This document shows, piece by piece, positions 1,171 through 18,543 of a stretch of 64,000 bases of DNA. Within the stretch, counting starts at the first letter, position 1. The number at the start of each line of letters is the position of its first letter. Position numbers and translations under genes: made by a program. Source of the DNA: Ramazzottius varieornatus (Eukaryota > Animalia > Tardigrada); the NCBI GenBank assembly GCA_001949185.1, contig BDGG01000001.1, forward strand, positions 4,949,624 through 5,013,623, in the 5' to 3' direction. Below the pieces are notes generated by a model. That model did no database searches and was not told where the DNA came from. It saw nothing but the letters and a program-made list of their open reading frames with translations.

Positions 1171-1658
1171 TTATCCGATGGCACTTCCGTGGCCCATGGC
1201 ATTTCCGGTCGAGTCCTGCCATGCCATGTTGTTGGTAATGGCTTTACCTTGTCCATGTGGACTCGCTACACGTGTATTGGCATCTCCTCCGCCGAAGACT
1301 CCACGACGGTTGGCACCTGCCGGTCGAACCCAGTCCACGTAAGTGTTAAGTCAAGTTTGATTCCCCAAAACTCCTGACTTACCTCCAACCGAGCTTCCGA
1401 ATGCTTTACCGTTTCCAATAGTATTCGAACTACCAATGGAGTTGGACTGCTTGATACCTGGAGCGCTCATACCGAATCCCATACTGACAGTGTCGGCGAA
1501 ATTGACGGGGTTCCTCAGGTTATGCGGATCATGAGCCACCGACATGGAAATTCCTCCACCTTGTGCTGTACTGTTTGCCGCCGTAGTCGGACTGATGTAC
1601 TTCGACAGATGGTAATGCAAACAGTTAAAACCAGGAGAGTAGATTTCAGGTTTTCCAT
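1171..1658 (-). pseudogene. Secreted Gly/Asn/Ser-rich protein, paralog of 5811-6338, frameshifted (pseudogene or assembly error)
   Basis: ATG 1658 gives MENLKSTLLVLTVCITICRSTSVRLRRQ. The homologous GGGISMSVAHDP...GNGKAFGSSVG lies in a different frame from ~1560. A phase-1 intron (1382-1317) sits at the same place as in the paralog; exon 2 reads GANRRGVFGGGDANT...GHGSAIG*. Confidence 0.75.
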
Positions 1659-1930
1659 TGCTAATTGTATCTTCTAGGAGAGGTAAACCAAGTAGGATGT
1701 CTGGACTTTTTGACGAAGAAACAAAACTACGGTACGGGCAATGAACGGATTCGAAGACTGGTGGTATAGAATATTGCTGATAAAGTACTGGTAACGTGCT
1801 GACTTCACTAGTTTTGGTCATCGAGAGCTATTTTGCCGGAAGATATTGGGTTCGTTCGATGGCAGTGCATGCACGATATGTCCTTGGGCTATACTCGGAG
1901 TCTGCGGAGACTCGAGTTAATATAGTGTTC

Positions 1931-2184
1931 AAGTTGCCACTCCCGTTCACTTTGCAACTGTAGCTACGGCCTTGCTCCGCCCCTTTCGCGACGTGTAACT
2001 ACATTTTGCTTTCCGGAGCTCCCCTTATTTTCGAAAAATAGCGTAATCGGAGTTACGGTTGGCTAGCAATTGGGAAGCATGGTGGCTGCCTAACTATTCA
2101 AAGTTCTGATCAGCTGCTGCGCTTATGAGTGACGTTGCAACTCATCTTAGCTACAGTGGGACTTTCATCTGGCAGTGGCAACTT
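1931..2184. mobile_element. Possible degenerate MITE (~250 bp)
   Basis: Imperfect inverted ends aagttgccact...actgtagcta (1931-1965) versus tagctacagt...agtggcaactt (2149-2184); no ORF; no clear TSD. Confidence 0.4.
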
Positions 2185-3232
2185 AATGTGTGTAATATCC
2201 ACGTGCAGTATCAGCAGTGATCTCCCAAAATCGCAAAAGAAATCGTTAGGCGTGTGCTAGTTTCATCGCCAATTTAATGCAAAATCATTGATCATCGTTT
2301 CGAGCCTGTGGTGGCTTCCGCACCGGCGCCGGTCGAAAGGAATGAAATACCGGAAGTGCACCGCGCCACCTGTAAGAGCACCCTGCGCCAGAGCAATTCT
2401 TTTGGAGCGCCTTTCTGCTTTATGGCGGCTTTTTTCCATTTTTCTAGAACAGCCTACTTTTGTGTCGCGGAGACGGAAAACATTGCACCACCGAGGCAAA
2501 ACAGTTGGAAACCCGGCAAACGGTTTGCAGATAGGCGCACAGGTAATTACAAGACCAAATTGACTTGAGCTCGGGTGGAGCCCAGATAGTATGTTAATAC
2601 AGTGAATATCGTAAGCGGTCATGGTGTTTTTGACGAGGTTGCCGGTTTCTATTCGATTGTCGATGAAGTTGCCTGATCACTCGATCGGATTACCGACAGA
2701 TTAGCAGCTCACCCAGCAAGCAGCCTCCACTTGTTCAGTGCCCGGCAAACAATCCCATTTTGTTGTACACGCTTGGCTTGCTGACGAAGCTGGTGAGAGC
2801 CGTAATCATTACTGAATGCCGTGTGGGTACCTTCTATCGACAATCCTTTTGCTGACGGCTGAGAGCAGCAAGAGAGACTACGGCAGCATTGCACACCTGT
2901 TGCAACAACCCATCCACTTATCATAATGACAAGGACACCTACCGCACACAGTCGAGAACTTTGATCCACACTGCTCATATTTGGTGCATGCTTGCTAGAG
3001 TCTGCAGCCTTATCGCTTTATCGTCAAGGTTTATACATTTATTGATATCCCTAATCACCGAAAGGGCAGCCATGTAACAAAGGCGCAACTCGAAACATCC
3101 GGTCCGCTGTATGGAGGACTCCTTCAAGATTATTCCATGTAATGGTGGAATTTGATTTCGAAGACTTTTCATCCTTGTTCTCATCCGGAATTGTGGATGA
3201 GGAAATCGTACGTCAAGAAATAATTTCTCAAA

Positions 3233-11815: not shown

Positions 11816-14800
11816 ATGCCAATATCGCCTCCTCGCGAACGTCTTCTTGTCCTCCTCGTCGCGACTGCATACATCCTTTTCATAGTAGCAGCCAGGTCCG
11901 CAGGTCGAGCTGGCCATGCAGCCCGTCGTGCTGACTATCACGGAGGCCACACCCACGGACACCTGCTCTCGTCCTCATCCGATCACCACGTCCAGTACTT
12001 GGAAGTACAATCTACGCTATCTCCACACCTCAAGAACAGGGACGCCATCTTCCACAGACGACTTGCACGGCGCCGTCTGGAGCGCTTGCGTCCATCCTAT
12101 GCTTTGATTTACCCGCGAATTTTGAAGCTTGTCCATCGTTTCTCTCCTCTTTTCGACTTCCTCAACCAGTCCTCGTCGGTCTGGGACAGTCGGAAAAGAC
12201 TTGAGCAACCGAGCGGTTTCCGCGTTCGTCTCGATATGGAGCTAAACGATGCGCCACTGCGAGTCGTCCTGCGCAAGAGCGGAAGTCGGCTGACCAGTCT
12301 GCCCTCACACGAAACCAGCCCGCTGAAAAGAGGATCCACTCGCCACGACGACCGTGCTCAAATGGACAGCAGTAACGCTCGAGGTGATTCGGTTTTGACA
12401 TTGTATCGACCATCCTTGAAATGATCAAATCTCGAGAAAACAGTCAAACTGGTACCGCCGTTAGTTTGCCCGATGTAATAAGATAGTGCACAGTTTAGTA
12501 GAAAAGAAAGTGAAATGTTTGAAGTTGACAGAGTGGACCTGACGATGCTGGACGACGAATTACACGGAACACTGCAACTGAACGACCAGGAGCTCAAGAT
12601 TTCCCCTCTGACCAAGCCGTACCGTCGACGTCTCGGACTGCGCCTACCAGTCTCTGCTCATGTATTACGACATCACCAGAGAAAATCTACAGACGACGAG
12701 AACATGCAGTTCCAGAGCAGACAGTCTTCCCAACGAGACAGACCGCGATCGTCTGACAGAGAGCGCCCCGAAAGTCGGGACTCTCGGAACCGCGACAGAC
12801 CGCGTTCTTCCGACCGTGACAGACCACCAAGCTCTACAGGCAGGGATACCCCACGTGGTCCTCCCGACGAACGAAGAGATCGTGACCGCGACAGAGACAG
12901 GAGCTCTAGAGGTAGAGACACTGGTCGACGCCCACCTGACCGACAAAATAACCGTGACCGGGACCGTGACCGAGACAGGGGTTCGTCTGAACGAAGAAAC
13001 GATCGGCCCTCCTCCGACCGGGAAGATTCGCGACGCTCAGGACGGCGTGACGGACGAGAGCGTGAGCTGGCGCATCAAAACGATGATGGTGGCAGACGGG
13101 AAAGGGGTCCAAACCGGAACCGCGATCGAGGTCGTGAAGGAGGTAGAGTTTCGGCCGGACCAGCAAATCGGAGAAAAAACGACGACGAGCGTCCGTCGCG
13201 CTCGGGTGTAGACTCAAGCAGGAAAGGCGTTGGGAAGGGAAACAGTTCGCGGCGCAGAGCCAAAGACCGCGGCCGGAGTAGTAAAAGAAAATCCACGCGC
13301 CGCCCGTCTGATAGCAGGAACGCACCTCCACCTGGACAGGAGCCAAGGAGACAGGCCAAGCCGGTTCCCAGTCCGAAGCAGAGTTCACCACAATCTGCCC
13401 GTGGACAAGCCCCACCTGCCAAAGCAAGTGCACCCAAGACGCAAGCGTCGTCACAAGGCGGTGTCAATCCGGCACCGAAGCGTGTTAGGAAACCTGCGCC
13501 AAAAGCGGTAAAGAGGAAACCAAAAGCTGTAAGGAGGAAACCAAAAGCTGTGGTGAGAAAGAAAGTGCAACTCATCGCAGAACGGGCACCCCCAAGTAGT
13601 CTGGCATCTAATAAACCAGTTGAAACCGGACCAGTCATGCCATACCAGAGTAACCTCGCTGAAGGAAACTTTATTGTTATCAAGTTATTCTTTGCGTTTG
13701 ATATGTCAGAATGGTTCACCAGAGAAAATATCGAGGTGGGTTGACTTATGAGGTATCTTTGAAAAAACAACGGTTAGTAACAATGGTTTTCCAGACGACA
13801 ATCGGCGACAAAAAGACCACCCTGAGGACTCCGGAAGCAGTTTTCACCCACATGTATAATGTAGCGCAGACACTGATTGACGAGCTCTTCGCACCGGAGA
13901 AGGTCACGCTGGTTCTTTCGAACATCAACGTTGAGTACAAGGTATTTCCAGGTCTGAAACCTGGAGACAGCTTGAAGACCCCTCTTCCGGATGTTCTGAA
14001 AAATGTCTGCGCTTCCAAAACGGGAGTACCTGGTGAGAGTAACTACTTCAAGAGAAGAGATGGAAGTAACACGGATATGCACTTCCAAATTATTTTCGGT
14101 AAGATTGCACGTGGAGTGAAATCAATGTCGTCCAGAACGTGATTGGATCAGTTTCGCGTCTGTATTGCAGGCTCAAAAAATCCGCCACCGTTGAAAGGAG
14201 CATCAGTCATGAAAGAACTTCTCGATGTCAATCACAGGCACCTGTACAAGAATCACTCACTTGGGCCGTCTTTCGATAGCCATCGGCAAAAGATACGAAA
14301 CTCCCGTATACGGTATTACTTTAGACCCTTCCTCCGAAAACGAAAAGGCTGGAATGTCACTTATCGTACCCGACGACCTACAGCTGCCACTACGGCTTCC
14401 ACGTTGATCACAACCCAGAAAGAAATCTGGGAAGTTGTTCACACAGTGTAGGTCACGCAGTCTGTTTGCCGTTTGCAGTCGTGCTGAAACAGTTTGGCGA
14501 TCTGTATTGTGTTGTAGCCCAACAACCACGACGACAACCACTACGACTACCACCAAGCCGATTACAACCACCACAAAGAACACAACCACTACGACGAAAC
14601 CACCCACCTCCAAGCATATGAACACCACCACCAGGCCACCCCTAAAGCCCATGATGAAGCGAGTGCTGAAAAAGATAAAGAAGAAAGTCAAGCTTCCTGA
14701 CGGTACAGAAGGCGAAGAAACGGTGGAAGAATGGGTCGATGAACCTATTGAGACGACCACGACTTCCAAACCGACAACCAAGCCCACATCTCCGAAAACA

Positions 14801-17383
14801 ACCAAAAAACCAGCTCCTGCCCCTGTGAAAACCACGACTAAAGCCCGACCAACGACAAGAAAGACGGTGAGGACCACCCCGCCTCGCCCAACCACCCGCA
14901 GACCTGTGCCGGCGACTACCAAAAGATTGGTGAGGATGACAACGACAGCTCGTAAGCGGCAAAAACCAAGTACAACTACGGAAGAACCGGAAGAAGAAGG
15001 CGAGGAGGAGTCTAAGACAGGCAGAGACGCGTTCGGTAATCCATACAAGGCAGCCACCACCACTGCACTGACCACCGTTCCGAGGAAGGTCGTAACGAAG
15101 AAACCACAGCCTACCACCACGACCACCAAAGCACCAGAAAGCGAAGAAGGAGAGAAGGAAGATGAAGAGACCACCCCTACGCCGGAGCAAAAAGCGCCAC
15201 CGGCAAAGACGACACAGGCAGGAAAGACGTCGAACAAGCCACCTCACAGTAAATTCAAGAGTGCGGATGATGAGGAAGAAGCTTCAAATCCCTACGGTAT
15301 GCCATTTGGCAAGAAGAAGCGAAGGAAAACAACGAGAACAACTCCTCTCGTAAGCCCCCAACTCACCACAGCGAAACCAACTACTCCCACCACGACAACA
15401 AGCACCACGGAAGCAGCTGAAGAGCCCGAAGAAGAGGAAGAGGAGGGTGTTCCGTATGGAGGAAAAACAGTAACAACGACGACAAACAGACCTACTACGA
15501 CGACGAGGAAGACCACTCGGAAGCGCCGACCCAAAACAACTGCGACGACAATGAGCACAACGACGACGACCGAAGAGACAGAAGAGCCGGAAGAAGAGGA
15601 GGAAGAAACAGCAGAACCCACCACACCAACTACTACAAAGAAACCGACGACTAAGAGACGGAATCGTACGAGGCGAAGGAAACTGACAACACGAAAACTA
15701 ACCACGACCACAACCACGACCGAAGAGCCCGAGGAGGAGGAGGAAGAAGAGGAAACTGAACCAATTACACAGCCAACAACACCGAAGCCCAAACCAACTA
15801 GAAAGAAACCGAAACGACGAACAACTACTCGTACTACCCTAGCGAGAATAACGATGAAACAGTCTACTTCAACCACACCGCTACCTGAAGAAGAGACCGA
15901 GGAACCCGAGTACCCGGAGGAAGAGGCAACCGACTTGACCACAGCAACGACCACGATGAAACCTAAGTCAACTACAACAAAAGCGAAACCTGTAACGACT
16001 TTCAGTGCCACCATGCCACCAGCTGTAACCACGACAGGACCACTAACGGAATGGACAGAGGAATGGCCTGAGGAATGGCCTCAGGAATGGCCCGAACAGC
16101 CTCAACAGGAATGGACAACTCCACCTCCACCTACCGTGACCAAACCACCGGTCACACTAGCCCCCACGACAGCTCCTCCAACCAAGACCACAAAATTACC
16201 TTCCACCGCTATACCAACTCTACCTCCGATGATTATAGAAAGTACAGATTACCCGGACGAAGTCACAGATGAATGGGGACAACTAATCGGCGCGGAGGAC
16301 AGTTCATACAACTATCCAACAATTCCACCCATTCCTACGAAACCAACCGAGGCTATCAAACCTCCGACTGTACCAGGAACCGCACCACCACCCACAACTT
16401 TAGCTGCCGTGACGACAACGACAACACGTCCTACAACAAAACGGACCACGACTGCGACTACCACCACTACCACCACGACACCTACCACCACGACTACCAC
16501 CCCTACCACTACAACAACTACCACCCCTACCACCACCACCACCACCACCACCACCACCCCTACCACCACAACAACTACCACCCCTACCACCACCACCACC
16601 CCTACCACCACAACAACTACCACCCCTACCACCACCACCACCACCACCACCCCTACCACTACAACAACTACCACTACAACTACAACCACAAAGAAGCCAG
16701 AAACTACCTCAACGACACCTATCATAACCTCACCGACACCGAGTAGTACCACCAAGAAGCCTGAGGAACCAATCAGTTCCCACCTCCATGGCGCTACGTA
16801 TATTGGCGGTTATTGCAACAGTAATATAGCAGAGCGTTGCTCCATTCTGAATCTCAAATCACTCAGAGGCCTAGCAGGAGCCATTCAGCTTGTCCATGAA
16901 GTAGCCAACGCTATTGGCATCCGGGACGATGGTGACGGTAACGACTGCGCCCCAGCAGACGGTTTAATCATGTCCCACCAGACCATCGCCGGGCTGCACG
17001 ACGAGGTTACAAGGAAACCAACCTGGAGTAAGTGTTCGATGCAACAGGCGCAGCAGCTACTTCAGTCAAACCCGGACTGCTTCGATGCGGAGAAGGGCAT
17101 GGTGGACCGTACGGCAATGAGCCAGTATCAGAACCCGAATGACTACAAGTTTGGTACGGAACTGAGCAAGGTCTGTGAAGCCGAGTTTGTGGGAAGTGTG
17201 GCTGTGCTAGACACAGATGACTTAGTGGAATGCGACAGTCTCCAGTGTCGCTCTATATCTGGGTCGGTGATGGATTATGGGTATCCATTGCCATACTACA
17301 GTGCGTGCAGTATGAGGGATAAGAATGCGCATTGTGAGAACAATGTGTGTTACGTGCCGGACGAGTATCGAGCCATCACTTAA
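11816..17383 (+). CDS. ADAMTS/reprolysin (M12B)-like secreted protein with degenerate zinc motif and large mucin insertion (exons approx. 11816-~12390, ~12495-13735, 13795-14098, 14171-14446, 14518-17383)
   Basis: Signal peptide; prodomain-like segments (YALIYPRI; LHGTLQLNDQELKISPL...HVL); metalloprotease-like N-half (IVIKLFFAFD...HMYNVAQTL...VTLVLSNI); C-half GATYIGGYC...CSI...HEVANAIGIRDDGDGNDC...IMS...WSKCS; ADAMTS-like Cys-rich tail. First intron boundaries are uncertain. Confidence 0.8.
16441..16690 (+). repeat. Coding ACC/ACT/ACA tandem repeat encoding poly-Thr with interspersed Pro (PTTTTTT)n
   Basis: Directly visible cctaccacc... repeats within the mucin exon. Confidence 0.95.
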
Positions 17384-17751
17384 CCCTCTTGAGCTGCGAG
17401 TAGATCGTTCTCCATGTTTCTAATTTAAATCTTTGTCTGAATGCTCTGTCACTGTCAAAGTGAGTTACTGATACGCTTTTTCGTGCTCATTGGGAGCTCT
17501 CTTGCTGGTGAACTGTTTCTTGGGTGATATAATTCGTTTCATCCTACTTTTTTTCTGATTGAGTATTTTTTTCCATTTTACGCTGTTACCCTGAGCGGAA
17601 GCAGGAAGGAATTTCATTAGTGCCGTGTTTGGTCAAAACGAATACAGAAATGCTTGTCAATTGTATTAAGTTAAACGAGCAAGCTTCTACAAACTTGCTG
17701 GCGGTAGTGAGTTGAAGCTTGCTTGCGTGACGTAATATACTGTGAGAAGCA

Positions 17752-18543
17752 TCACTGTATCAATGCAAGAATGATCGCGGACGTCCAAACGAAGAGTGAC
17801 ATTTCAGTAAACTTCGTAACTTTTTTGCCGGAAGCAGCGTATTCACGGACGATGGTACAGTTTGAGCACGGTGTGATCATTGGCGGAACAGTTGCCGTCG
17901 TACGACATCTGCCATCATGAAAGGCACAGTGCAACGCCTCATTTCCAGTTATGTTGTACAGCTCGCGGAAAGGAACGAACGGACCGTAGTTACATCCGGC
18001 CATCTGGCACACGTGTTTCATAACAGGATAGAATGTCCTTGGAGAAACTCGGAGACGATTTCCCGGTTGCCCGGTAAGGATTCATACCGGGTTCGTGATC
18101 GTCATAAACTTCGTCCTCGTGATTTATACACCGTCTTGCCACTGTCCCTAACAAAAGCCGGTTGTTCATGTGCTCCGAGCCATGGGTTACCCCTCGTCAC
18201 AGGGCTTACCGTAATCTGGATGGGTTTTGTTGTAGTACACCGTGACACAAGACTGACTCTCGGGCGGTCTGTCTTCCGCGACGGTTTTGTTCCCACATGG
18301 ACCTAAAAAGCACTCATTTGCGCCCTGCTCGAACATACAGTCTGCTCTCGATACTTTCTCATTGCACTGGTAGCACTTCGGGTTCGCCAACCATTCCGGA
18401 GACGCTTTGTGTGGTTCGTGGACAATGACAACAGCCTGCCGTAGAGCGCTGTTGCTTGGTACAGTGGAGGATGCTGCTGTGAGAAACACAGCACTACAGA
18501 ACGAAAAGGGTCCTGCGGCTGCTGGATGGGCACGAAGACTCAT
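17752..18543 (-). CDS. Possible Ly6/three-finger-like, GPI-anchored Cys-rich protein
   Basis: KCYQC...DC...C...C...SC exon; spliced exon GTVARRCIN; final segment with CQMAGCN and hydrophobic C-terminus SLFVWTSAIILALIQ*. The last junction needs a weak 40-nt intron or a frameshift. Confidence 0.45.

Follow-up and report, generated by a model that had tools for sequence, protein, structure and literature searches.

A tardigrade M12B metalloprotease homologue whose degenerate catalytic-type domain may close a long mucin-like loop

Introduction

In the gelatinases MMP-2 and MMP-9 the catalytic domain is interrupted by three fibronectin type II modules, and leishmanolysin has an insert between its zinc ligands; these inserts are folded modules of ~60–175 residues, they occupy loops other than the one considered here, they belong to active enzymes, and they serve as precedents for large surface-loop insertions in a metzincin fold. 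Long mucin-type segments are found in the mucin domain of ADAMTS7 and ADAMTS12 and in the Pro/Thr/Ser-rich (PTS) segments of mucins, where they sit between folded domains; since such a segment is not inside a domain, it forms a linker with free ends and not a closed loop. Here, we describe a locus of the tardigrade Ramazzottius varieornatus, at positions 11816–17383 of the + strand of a 64,000-nucleotide (nt) stretch of genomic DNA (C1:4949624–5013623 in an assembly of 55.8 Mb and 200 contigs; hereafter the window), in which a predicted gene appears to place a mucin-like segment within the catalytic-type domain of an M12B metalloprotease homologue.

Non-catalytic members of the M12B family have been described, namely ADAM2, 7, 11, 18, 22, 23, 29 and 32 and UNC-71 of C. 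elegans; the inactive ADAMs keep the fold and the Met-turn, have substituted zinc-binding residues, and are thought to bind and not to cleave (PMC11266112). The tardigrade gene resembles them in its probable M12B fold with substituted zinc ligands and a conserved Met-turn. The inactive ADAMs, however, are membrane proteins with intact compact domains, most of which have lost the first His and/or the Glu, and no large insert inside the domain is reported for them in that paper (PMC11266112), whereas the tardigrade homologues keep the His and the Glu, with Asn and Asp in place of the two remaining ligands.

Compared with the gelatinase and leishmanolysin inserts, that of the tardigrade gene would be ~800 residues long, disordered and mucin-like. 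As with ADAMTS7 and ADAMTS12, the product of the gene would be a secreted, M12B-related protein with a long Thr/Pro-rich segment that is presumably O-glycosylated. Relative to ADAMTS and reprolysin domains, the short loop between strands β3 and β4 would be replaced by ~800 residues, the zinc motif is without two of its His, there is neither a cysteine switch (the pro-region is Cys-free) nor a thrombospondin repeat, and the N-terminal half of the domain (N-half) is unrecognizable by sequence. We know of no such looped topology among described mucins or metzincins.

The reading that we favor, with moderate confidence, is that one gene encodes a secreted pseudo-protease in which the M12B fold closes a loop of ~800 residues that is probably O-glycosylated. 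The protein would be secreted and non-catalytic and would belong to a branch of M12B (ADAMTS-type) metalloprotease homologues that is specific to tardigrades, with the domain order signal peptide, Cys-free pro-like region, basic and RD-rich linker of ~330 amino acids (aa), catalytic-type domain and short ADAMTS-like Cys-rich tail. A surface loop between β3 and the edge strand β4 would have grown to an ~800-residue Thr/Pro-rich polyampholyte, and the N-half (β1, helix A, β2, helix B, β3) and the C-terminal half (C-half) would co-fold into one domain of a sheet plus helices. The lone Cys of the N-half is probably bonded to the Cys that precedes β5, so that the mucin segment would be a closed loop, with a compact knob holding its two ends. 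Such a hyper-expanded β3–β4 loop in one gene would probably represent a variant of a known family.

Organization of the Gene

Four open reading frames (ORFs) of the + strand are aligned at the locus (11816–12424, 12515–13744, 13711–14142 and 14435–17383). The first has an N-terminus judged by eye to be signal-peptide-like, followed by a Cys-free region; the second, of 409 aa, has a C-terminal end that reads NFIVIKLFFAFDMSEWFTRENIE; the third contains the sequence ...DMHFQIIFG; and the last has 982 codons. The boundaries of five exons were set by reading the sequence (GT..AG sites and frame arithmetic), and all searches and fold predictions were run exon by exon on this locus. Taken together, the exons probably constitute one in-frame gene, 11816–17383 (+), with a product of ~1,702 aa and the following predicted parts:

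11816–12383 (+), predicted exon 1, phase 1, donor GT at 12384: ATG, signal-peptide-like start and Cys-free pro-like region; based on the ORF and the sequence, with short run X4 contigs at 11995–12257.
12507–13735 (+), predicted exon 2, phase 0, donor GAG/GTGGGT at 13736: end of the pro-like region, ~330 aa of disordered Arg/Asp/Ser- and Lys/Pro-rich sequence, and candidate β1 (NFIVIKLFFAFD...); based on the 409-aa ORF and X4 contigs at 12990–13143 and 13269–13476, with no Pfam match.
13795–14098 (+), exon 3, phase 1, donor G/GTAAG: candidate N-half of the M12B domain, with helix A, β2, helix B (lone Cys in VLKNVC) and β3 (DMHFQIIF).
14171–14312 (+), predicted exon 4, phase 2: basic, 142 nt, 47 codons, acceptor TTGCAG/G, donor ACG/GTATTA; based on frame arithmetic, as it brings exons 3 and 5 into frame.
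14518–16783 (+), first part of exon 5: mucin-like insert of 755 aa.
16784–17083 (+), second part of exon 5: C-half of the M12B catalytic domain, with β4 (GATYIGGYC), β5 (RCSIL), active-site helix, Met-turn (LIMS), C-terminal helix and five Cys.
16895–16930 (+), within the C-half: degenerate zinc-binding motif HEVANAIGIRDD.
17084–17383 (+), Cys-rich tail with six Cys; stop codon at 17381–17383.

The exon 3 donor (14098) and the exon 5 start (14518) are 420 nt apart. Direct joins from 14098 to 14518 or to 14479 are out of frame, and an alternative join to 14493 is in frame with a weak acceptor; the donor at 14312 could also be joined to the acceptor at 14479. A sequence-only reading of this DNA had separated the two halves of the domain by a short basic exon, and the 142-nt exon 4 does offer an in-frame path of this kind. 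The same reading had seen ~750 aa of Thr/Pro/Lys/Glu-rich sequence in the open frame of the C-half, which agrees with the Cys-free 755 aa measured here; its figure of ~850 residues for the whole insertion was too high, the gap from QIIFG to HGATY being ~803 residues with exon 4 included.

The linker of exon 2 deserves separate mention. At 12700–13600 (+), RDRDRDR and RSSDR are followed by Lys/Pro/Ala-rich sequence, giving ~330 aa between the pro-like region and the catalytic domain, and a tandem repeat at 13499–13551 has a 21-nt unit encoding KPKAV(K/R)RK. The RS/RD-like composition of this linker is unusual in a secreted protein.

The C-Half and Its Zinc Motif

The C-half is a member of the M12B reprolysin family. 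When every exon was searched against Pfam, only the C-half gave a match: from HGATYIGGYC (nt 16787) it corresponds to positions 99–195 of the 200 positions of Reprolysin PF01421, with 28.1 bits (cut-off 20.8) and an E value of 2.4e-6. Among solved structures in PDB it matched residues 109–198 of the snake-venom metalloproteinase 4q1l (E = 0.004), where LIMS falls on the Met-turn CIMA, and further 3gbo and, weakly, ADAMTS-1. As compared with ADAMTS-1 (2JIH, 3Q2G) and the P-I snake venom metalloproteinase 4Q1L, the C-half aligns from β4 through the C-terminal helix; its likeness to ADAMTS-1 takes in the GxxYxGxxC...RCS pattern, the placing of the Cys residues and, weakly, the opening part of a candidate disintegrin-like tail. 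The ADAMTS-1 alignment runs to query residue 167, into the start of the disintegrin-like domain (ADAMTS-1 residues ~210–265; whole-hit E value 0.05). The Cys-rich tail gave no further Pfam domain, the last 227 aa gave no TSP_1 match that would mark a thrombospondin type 1 repeat, and the frame stops ~100 aa past the catalytic domain. The reprolysin-like character that had been assigned to the sequence from HGATYIGGYC is thus borne out by PF01421 and 4q1l, and the accompanying label "ADAMTS-like" has to be limited to the catalytic and candidate disintegrin-like parts because the thrombospondin repeat is absent.

The zinc motif HEVANAIGIRDD aligns to HELGHNLGMRHD of 4q1l with the second His replaced by Asn, the third His replaced by Asp and the Glu kept; it departs in this way from the consensus HExxHxxGxxHD. 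These substitutions are kept in the homologues P0001, P0002, P0003 and P0006 listed below, and HE-x-x-N-x-x-G-x-R-D-D (H, E, N, G, R, D and D) is invariant in all tardigrade homologues, in which the RCSI strand is kept too. Because all homologues keep the degenerate motif, the protein is probably a non-catalytic pseudo-protease, and the conserved Asn and Asp argue for a role in binding or anchoring, comparable to that of the ADAMs known to be inactive. The knob would most likely be a binding or anchoring module and not a protease. The earlier proposal of a product "rather than an enzyme" is in line with this conservation.

The Insert and Its Relatives

The insert comprises 755 aa, of which 35% are Thr, 14% Pro, 11% Glu and 9% Lys (Thr and Ser together 39%; no Cys), and it shares one frame of 955 codons with the C-half. 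Basic Thr-rich blocks alternate with poly-Glu blocks, and a poly-Thr/Pro array is located at 16445–16691. The segment has the length, the Ser/Thr/Pro-rich composition and the lack of Cys of a mucin-type PTS domain, and it is probably O-glycosylated. It also holds three NPY/VPY motifs and two RxKR motifs; the RxKR pair may leave room for a later cleavage into two chains that stay associated. A 12-nt tandem repeat at 16048–16092 (+), encoding EWPEEWPQEWPE, forms a Trp/Glu/Pro island amid the Thr-rich sequence.

An exhaustive HMMER scan for homologues of the C-half returned four clusters only:

P0001: 72% identity to the C-half; holds the C-half only.
P0002 (Hypsibius exemplaris OQV13937.1): 40% identity to the C-half; nearest of the named homologues.
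P0003 and P0006: ENA proteins.
P0004: cnidarian ADAMTS-like protein.

A word-indexed protein search with the C-half within its long ORF (range 540–1718 aa) gave no match. Three other tardigrade lineages share a low-complexity/poly-Thr region with repeated NPY(G) motifs that enters the same junction. In P0002, P0003 and P0006, low-complexity sequence with poly-Thr at its end and repeated [FG][GN][ND]PY[GE] motifs runs in frame directly into PIS-H-x-GA[TS]Y[LI]GGYC, as it does in the window. PY dipeptides are in excess in the region of the relatives (12 versus 1.9 expected, P<0.0005; 7 versus 2.7, P=0.0065), and one of the three PY motifs of the window insert is an exact FGNPY common to H. exemplaris. 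Because the junction, the in-frame low complexity and the PY motifs are common to the relatives, the insert is, judged from these sequences, homologous across the lineages; it predates their split and is not an assembly artefact.

It is highly improbable that the gene is a decaying one, i.e., a former protease broken by runaway low-complexity expansion and now functionless. Its degenerate zinc motif, the very low apparent expression and the fact that four of the seven strain differences within the insert are non-synonymous would fit such a history, but the open frame, the Cys pattern, the junction and the substituted motif itself are conserved between species at 40–72% identity, and the conservation of exon 3 greatly exceeds that of its flanks.

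The H. exemplaris entry OQV13937.1, annotated as "putative E3 ubiquitin-protein ligase Zswim2," is a chimeric model: its residues 1 to ~500 are the NPY-repeat/poly-Thr insert and the reprolysin-like C-half, fused to a SWIM/RING protein. No ZSWIM2-like sequence that would indicate synteny with OQV13937.1 was found in the window.

The Candidate N-Half

P0007, a 126-aa ENA protein from a related species, is ~79% identical to exon 3 across exactly 13795–14098, and its identity in the read-through flanks amounts to only 3 of 18 and 1 of 6 residues; since P0007 is conserved inside the exon and not in the flanks, exon 3 and its borders are under constraint. AlphaFold2 (AF2) predicted for exon 3, at low confidence (predicted local distance difference test, pLDDT, 44.7), the elements H13–32, E38–41, H64–73, E82–85 (an extra short strand) and E95–100, an order of helices and strands that is the one expected after β1 in the adamalysin fold. 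Alignment by hhalign of exon 3 with canonical ADAM/ADAMTS exons of the same genome gave P=0.059 in the expected register, which places LFAPEKVTLVLSNINV on LYAPLNIFVALTGVEIW and VLKNVC on TLKNFL.

The β1 exon, exon 3 and the C-half were co-folded as three separate chains with ESMFold2. The interface score ipSAE was 0.70 (runs 0.63, 0.71 and 0.70) versus 0.00, 0.05 and 0.01 for the controls. Of 78 solved complexes, 51 attain the mark applied, as do 2 of 108 mismatched pairs, and a pass may reflect likeness to solved folds, which is the very point at issue here. The score fell to 0.01 once exon 3 was swapped for an unrelated protein. The runs agreed in at least 44% of contacts, with a partner pLDDT of at least 61. 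Confident contacts connect residues 16–41 (helix A, β2) and 67–72 (helix B) of exon 3 with residues 7–9 (β4), 19–24 (β5), 32–47 (active-site helix) and 82–96 of the C-half; among them, helix A (exon 3 residues 16–35) contacts the active-site helix (C-half 32–47), and residues 71–72 contact 22–24. Adamalysin II has its helix A packed next to the active-site helix, both on the concave side of the sheet, an arrangement that the co-fold model reproduces.

The distribution of Cys residues is also informative. In the complete model there are 12 Cys, of which exon 3 contributes one (in VLKNVC), the catalytic C-half five and the tail six; exons 1, 2 and 4 and the insert, ~1,400 residues in all, contain none. 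The total is even only when both halves are counted. The odd number of five in the C-half would need a sixth, which the single exon 3 Cys would supply. Exon 3 residues 71–72 and C-half residues 22–24, which include the Cys of ERCSIL, both lie in the predicted interface. In ADAMTS-1 we take the helix-B Cys (FCNWQ) to be paired with the Cys before β5 (SRSC), and in the model the exon 3 Cys probably bonds to the Cys before β5.

Paralogues in the Same Genome

Reprolysin is matched 12 times in the genome. The matches nearest to the C-half are L004 and L011 (contig C9), L007 (C5) and L006 (C2), at an identity of only 26–37%. L007 (G000:C5:1051054–1054362, ORF 1369–3015 on the - strand) has a whole reprolysin-like domain in a single ORF, with an intact HELAHALGMQHE, and carries ~55 extra residues in the β3–β4 loop, between ...ALTMLDLF and VGLALLGSTC; its N-terminal region is long, poly-Pro and basic and is followed by a short Thr-rich stretch, and the domain found no homologue in the word-indexed protein search. 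L004 and L011 (G000:C9:704927–710540) are in tandem, ~2.3 kb apart, with ~20–30 extra residues at β3–β4. The zinc motif HExxHxxGxxH is intact in L007, L004 and L011. The N-halves of the nearest paralogues have no Pfam match either. Because L007, L004 and L011 carry extra residues there, the β3–β4 loop is already enlarged in the tardigrade subfamily; theirs is enlarged by tens (~20–55) and not hundreds of residues, and on sequence comparison the present gene is the extreme case.

Transcript Evidence

None of the public sequencing runs is on record as RNA; X1, X3 and X4 are guessed to be RNA, and the kind of X7 is not on record. The contigs placed on the locus are 62–729 nt long at a depth of 2–5, and the apparent expression of the gene is very low. 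Pieces of the three RNA-guessed runs all fall within predicted exons 1, 2 and 5 (insert and C-half included) and none in introns. X1 and X3 have contigs inside the insert at a depth similar to that of the C-half contigs, X1, X3 and X4 contigs span 16927–17394 (the end of the C-half and the tail), and no contig covers 14940–15925 or 16473–16927. X7 is probably low-coverage DNA, by its size and depth, and its contig offers independent confirmation that exon 3 lies next to the beginning of the insert in the DNA.

We infer a single transcript from three considerations: exon 1 has the sole signal-peptide-like start; exon 5, where no signal sequence follows the first in-frame ATG, is without a signal-bearing start and yet rich in extracellular-type Cys and mucin-like sequence; and neither half should fold alone.

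If the insert were largely or alternatively spliced out, the main protein would have an ordinary short loop. Nothing direct favors this, although low-complexity exons can hold cryptic splice sites and two stretches, 14940–15925 and 16473–16927, have no coverage. We consider it very unlikely, given that two RNA-guessed runs have contigs inside the insert at a depth like that of the C-half, that all 755 codons are open and in frame with the C-half, and that homologous inserts with FGNPY/NPYG motifs stay open in other species.

Over ~1 kb of contigs (14713–17250), run X3 and the assembly disagree at 10 sites, five synonymous and five non-synonymous, whereas X1, X4 and X7 are identical to the assembly; X3 probably derives from another strain or population.

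Weighing of a Single Protein Against Its Alternatives

A number of results weigh against one protein with both halves. Exon 3 and the β1 segment have no match in Pfam, PDB or the ESM Atlas, where the best score of exon 3 was 0.89, to unnamed clusters and with recognition under the useful range; a phmmer search of PDB with the N-half gave chance hits only (pseudoazurin and an oxidoreductase). Comparison of exon 3 and the β1 exon with paralogues L004, L006, L007 and L011 by BLASTP and Smith-Waterman stayed within shuffle noise. AF2 models of each half alone were poor (pLDDT 44.7 for exon 3 and 44.2 for the C-half), and the N-half chains in the co-fold reached a pLDDT of only 34–42. The disulfide pairing depends on an assumed ADAMTS-1 connectivity, and no explicit pairing for the ADAMTS M-domain was found in the literature checked. 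No orthologue protein model has both halves; the N-terminal 70 residues of P0006, tried as an N-half, aligned with a score equal to the shuffle mean and are probably intron read-through. Finally, the contigs of the public runs at the locus, all of them short, contain no splice joints, and a single contig (X7, 13983–14528) extends across the proposed introns, in unspliced form.

The claims of the sequence-only reading that concern the fold are supported in part. The N-half that it had ended at DMHFQIIF does end there as an exon (...DMHFQIIFG at 14098, with a GTAAG donor), though the databases do not recognize it; the profile searches that it had called for linked the C-half to Reprolysin and left the N-half with the hhalign P=0.059; and the insertion site that it had proposed to look for in orthologs is represented in other tardigrades by the junction of insert and C-half, not by a model with both halves. 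One fold with a mucin loop, its central idea, is the best-supported model for the predicted transcript (co-fold 0.70 versus 0.05, Cys parity and conserved junction). The clasp topology is plausible as modeled.

It is unlikely, in our view, that there is one protein in which exon 3 is an unrelated small α/β module and only a C-terminal M12B remnant stands behind a disordered region. The missing Pfam, PDB, Atlas and significant paralogue similarity of exon 3, together with its low-confidence AF2 model, would be expected in that case. Replacement of exon 3, however, makes the co-fold collapse from 0.70 to 0.01, the contacts predicted are the ones that a backing helix would make with the active-site helix, and the odd five Cys of the C-half are completed by the exon 3 Cys. 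The order of helices and strands and the in-register hhalign alignment also fit the N-half of a reprolysin, and a remnant consisting of β4, β5 and a helix is not expected to fold alone.

Quite unlikely, too, is the production of two separate products, in which the intron that follows exon 3 or the one that follows exon 4 usually remains unspliced, a truncated pro-linker-N-half protein ends at a stop at 14140–14142 or 14449–14451, and the insert and C-half form a separate or untranslated unit. The unspliced X7 contig is the sole one over 14099–14517, the Logan-derived P0008 reads through the exon 3 donor, and the exon 4 donor GTATTA is weak, all of which would agree with retention in the absence of any joints. 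The low depth and small total size of their source, on the other hand, indicate that X7 and P0008 probably come from genomic DNA. Exon 5 lacks both a plausible start and a signal peptide of its own and yet encodes 11 extracellular-type Cys and a mucin-like region, the insert–C-half unit is conserved in three other lineages, and half a domain in each product is unlikely to be stable.

Significance

If the single-protein model is true, the metzincin fold tolerates an insertion four times its own size, placed before the substrate-binding edge strand, and tardigrade lineages have kept this design once the zinc site had been lost. The gene would then be a natural example of a mucin segment held as a closed loop, of relevance to protein topology and to the tardigrade extracellular matrix. 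The role of the protein would be extracellular and structural, and a hydrated brush in the extracellular matrix is a reasonable guess; the sequence-only reading had proposed a place in cuticle, egg coat, glue or mucus, which the protein may have. More tentatively, and with the odds somewhat against it, eutardigrades may have a conserved class of "looped mucins," in which a disulfide-locked, dead ADAMTS-type domain holds both ends of an O-glycosylated NPYG-repeat segment of several hundred residues; in the cuticle, the egg shell or the gut lining, such proteins could form a hydrated brush that is anchored. The finding concerns a lineage-restricted gene with low expression. It also carries a warning for annotation, as automated models split or mis-fuse the gene, the H. 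exemplaris homologue labelled "Zswim2" being a case in point.

Just downstream of the gene, a convergent ORF at 18187–18543 (-) has a signal-peptide-like start and several Cys, and possibly encodes a small secreted Cys-rich protein.

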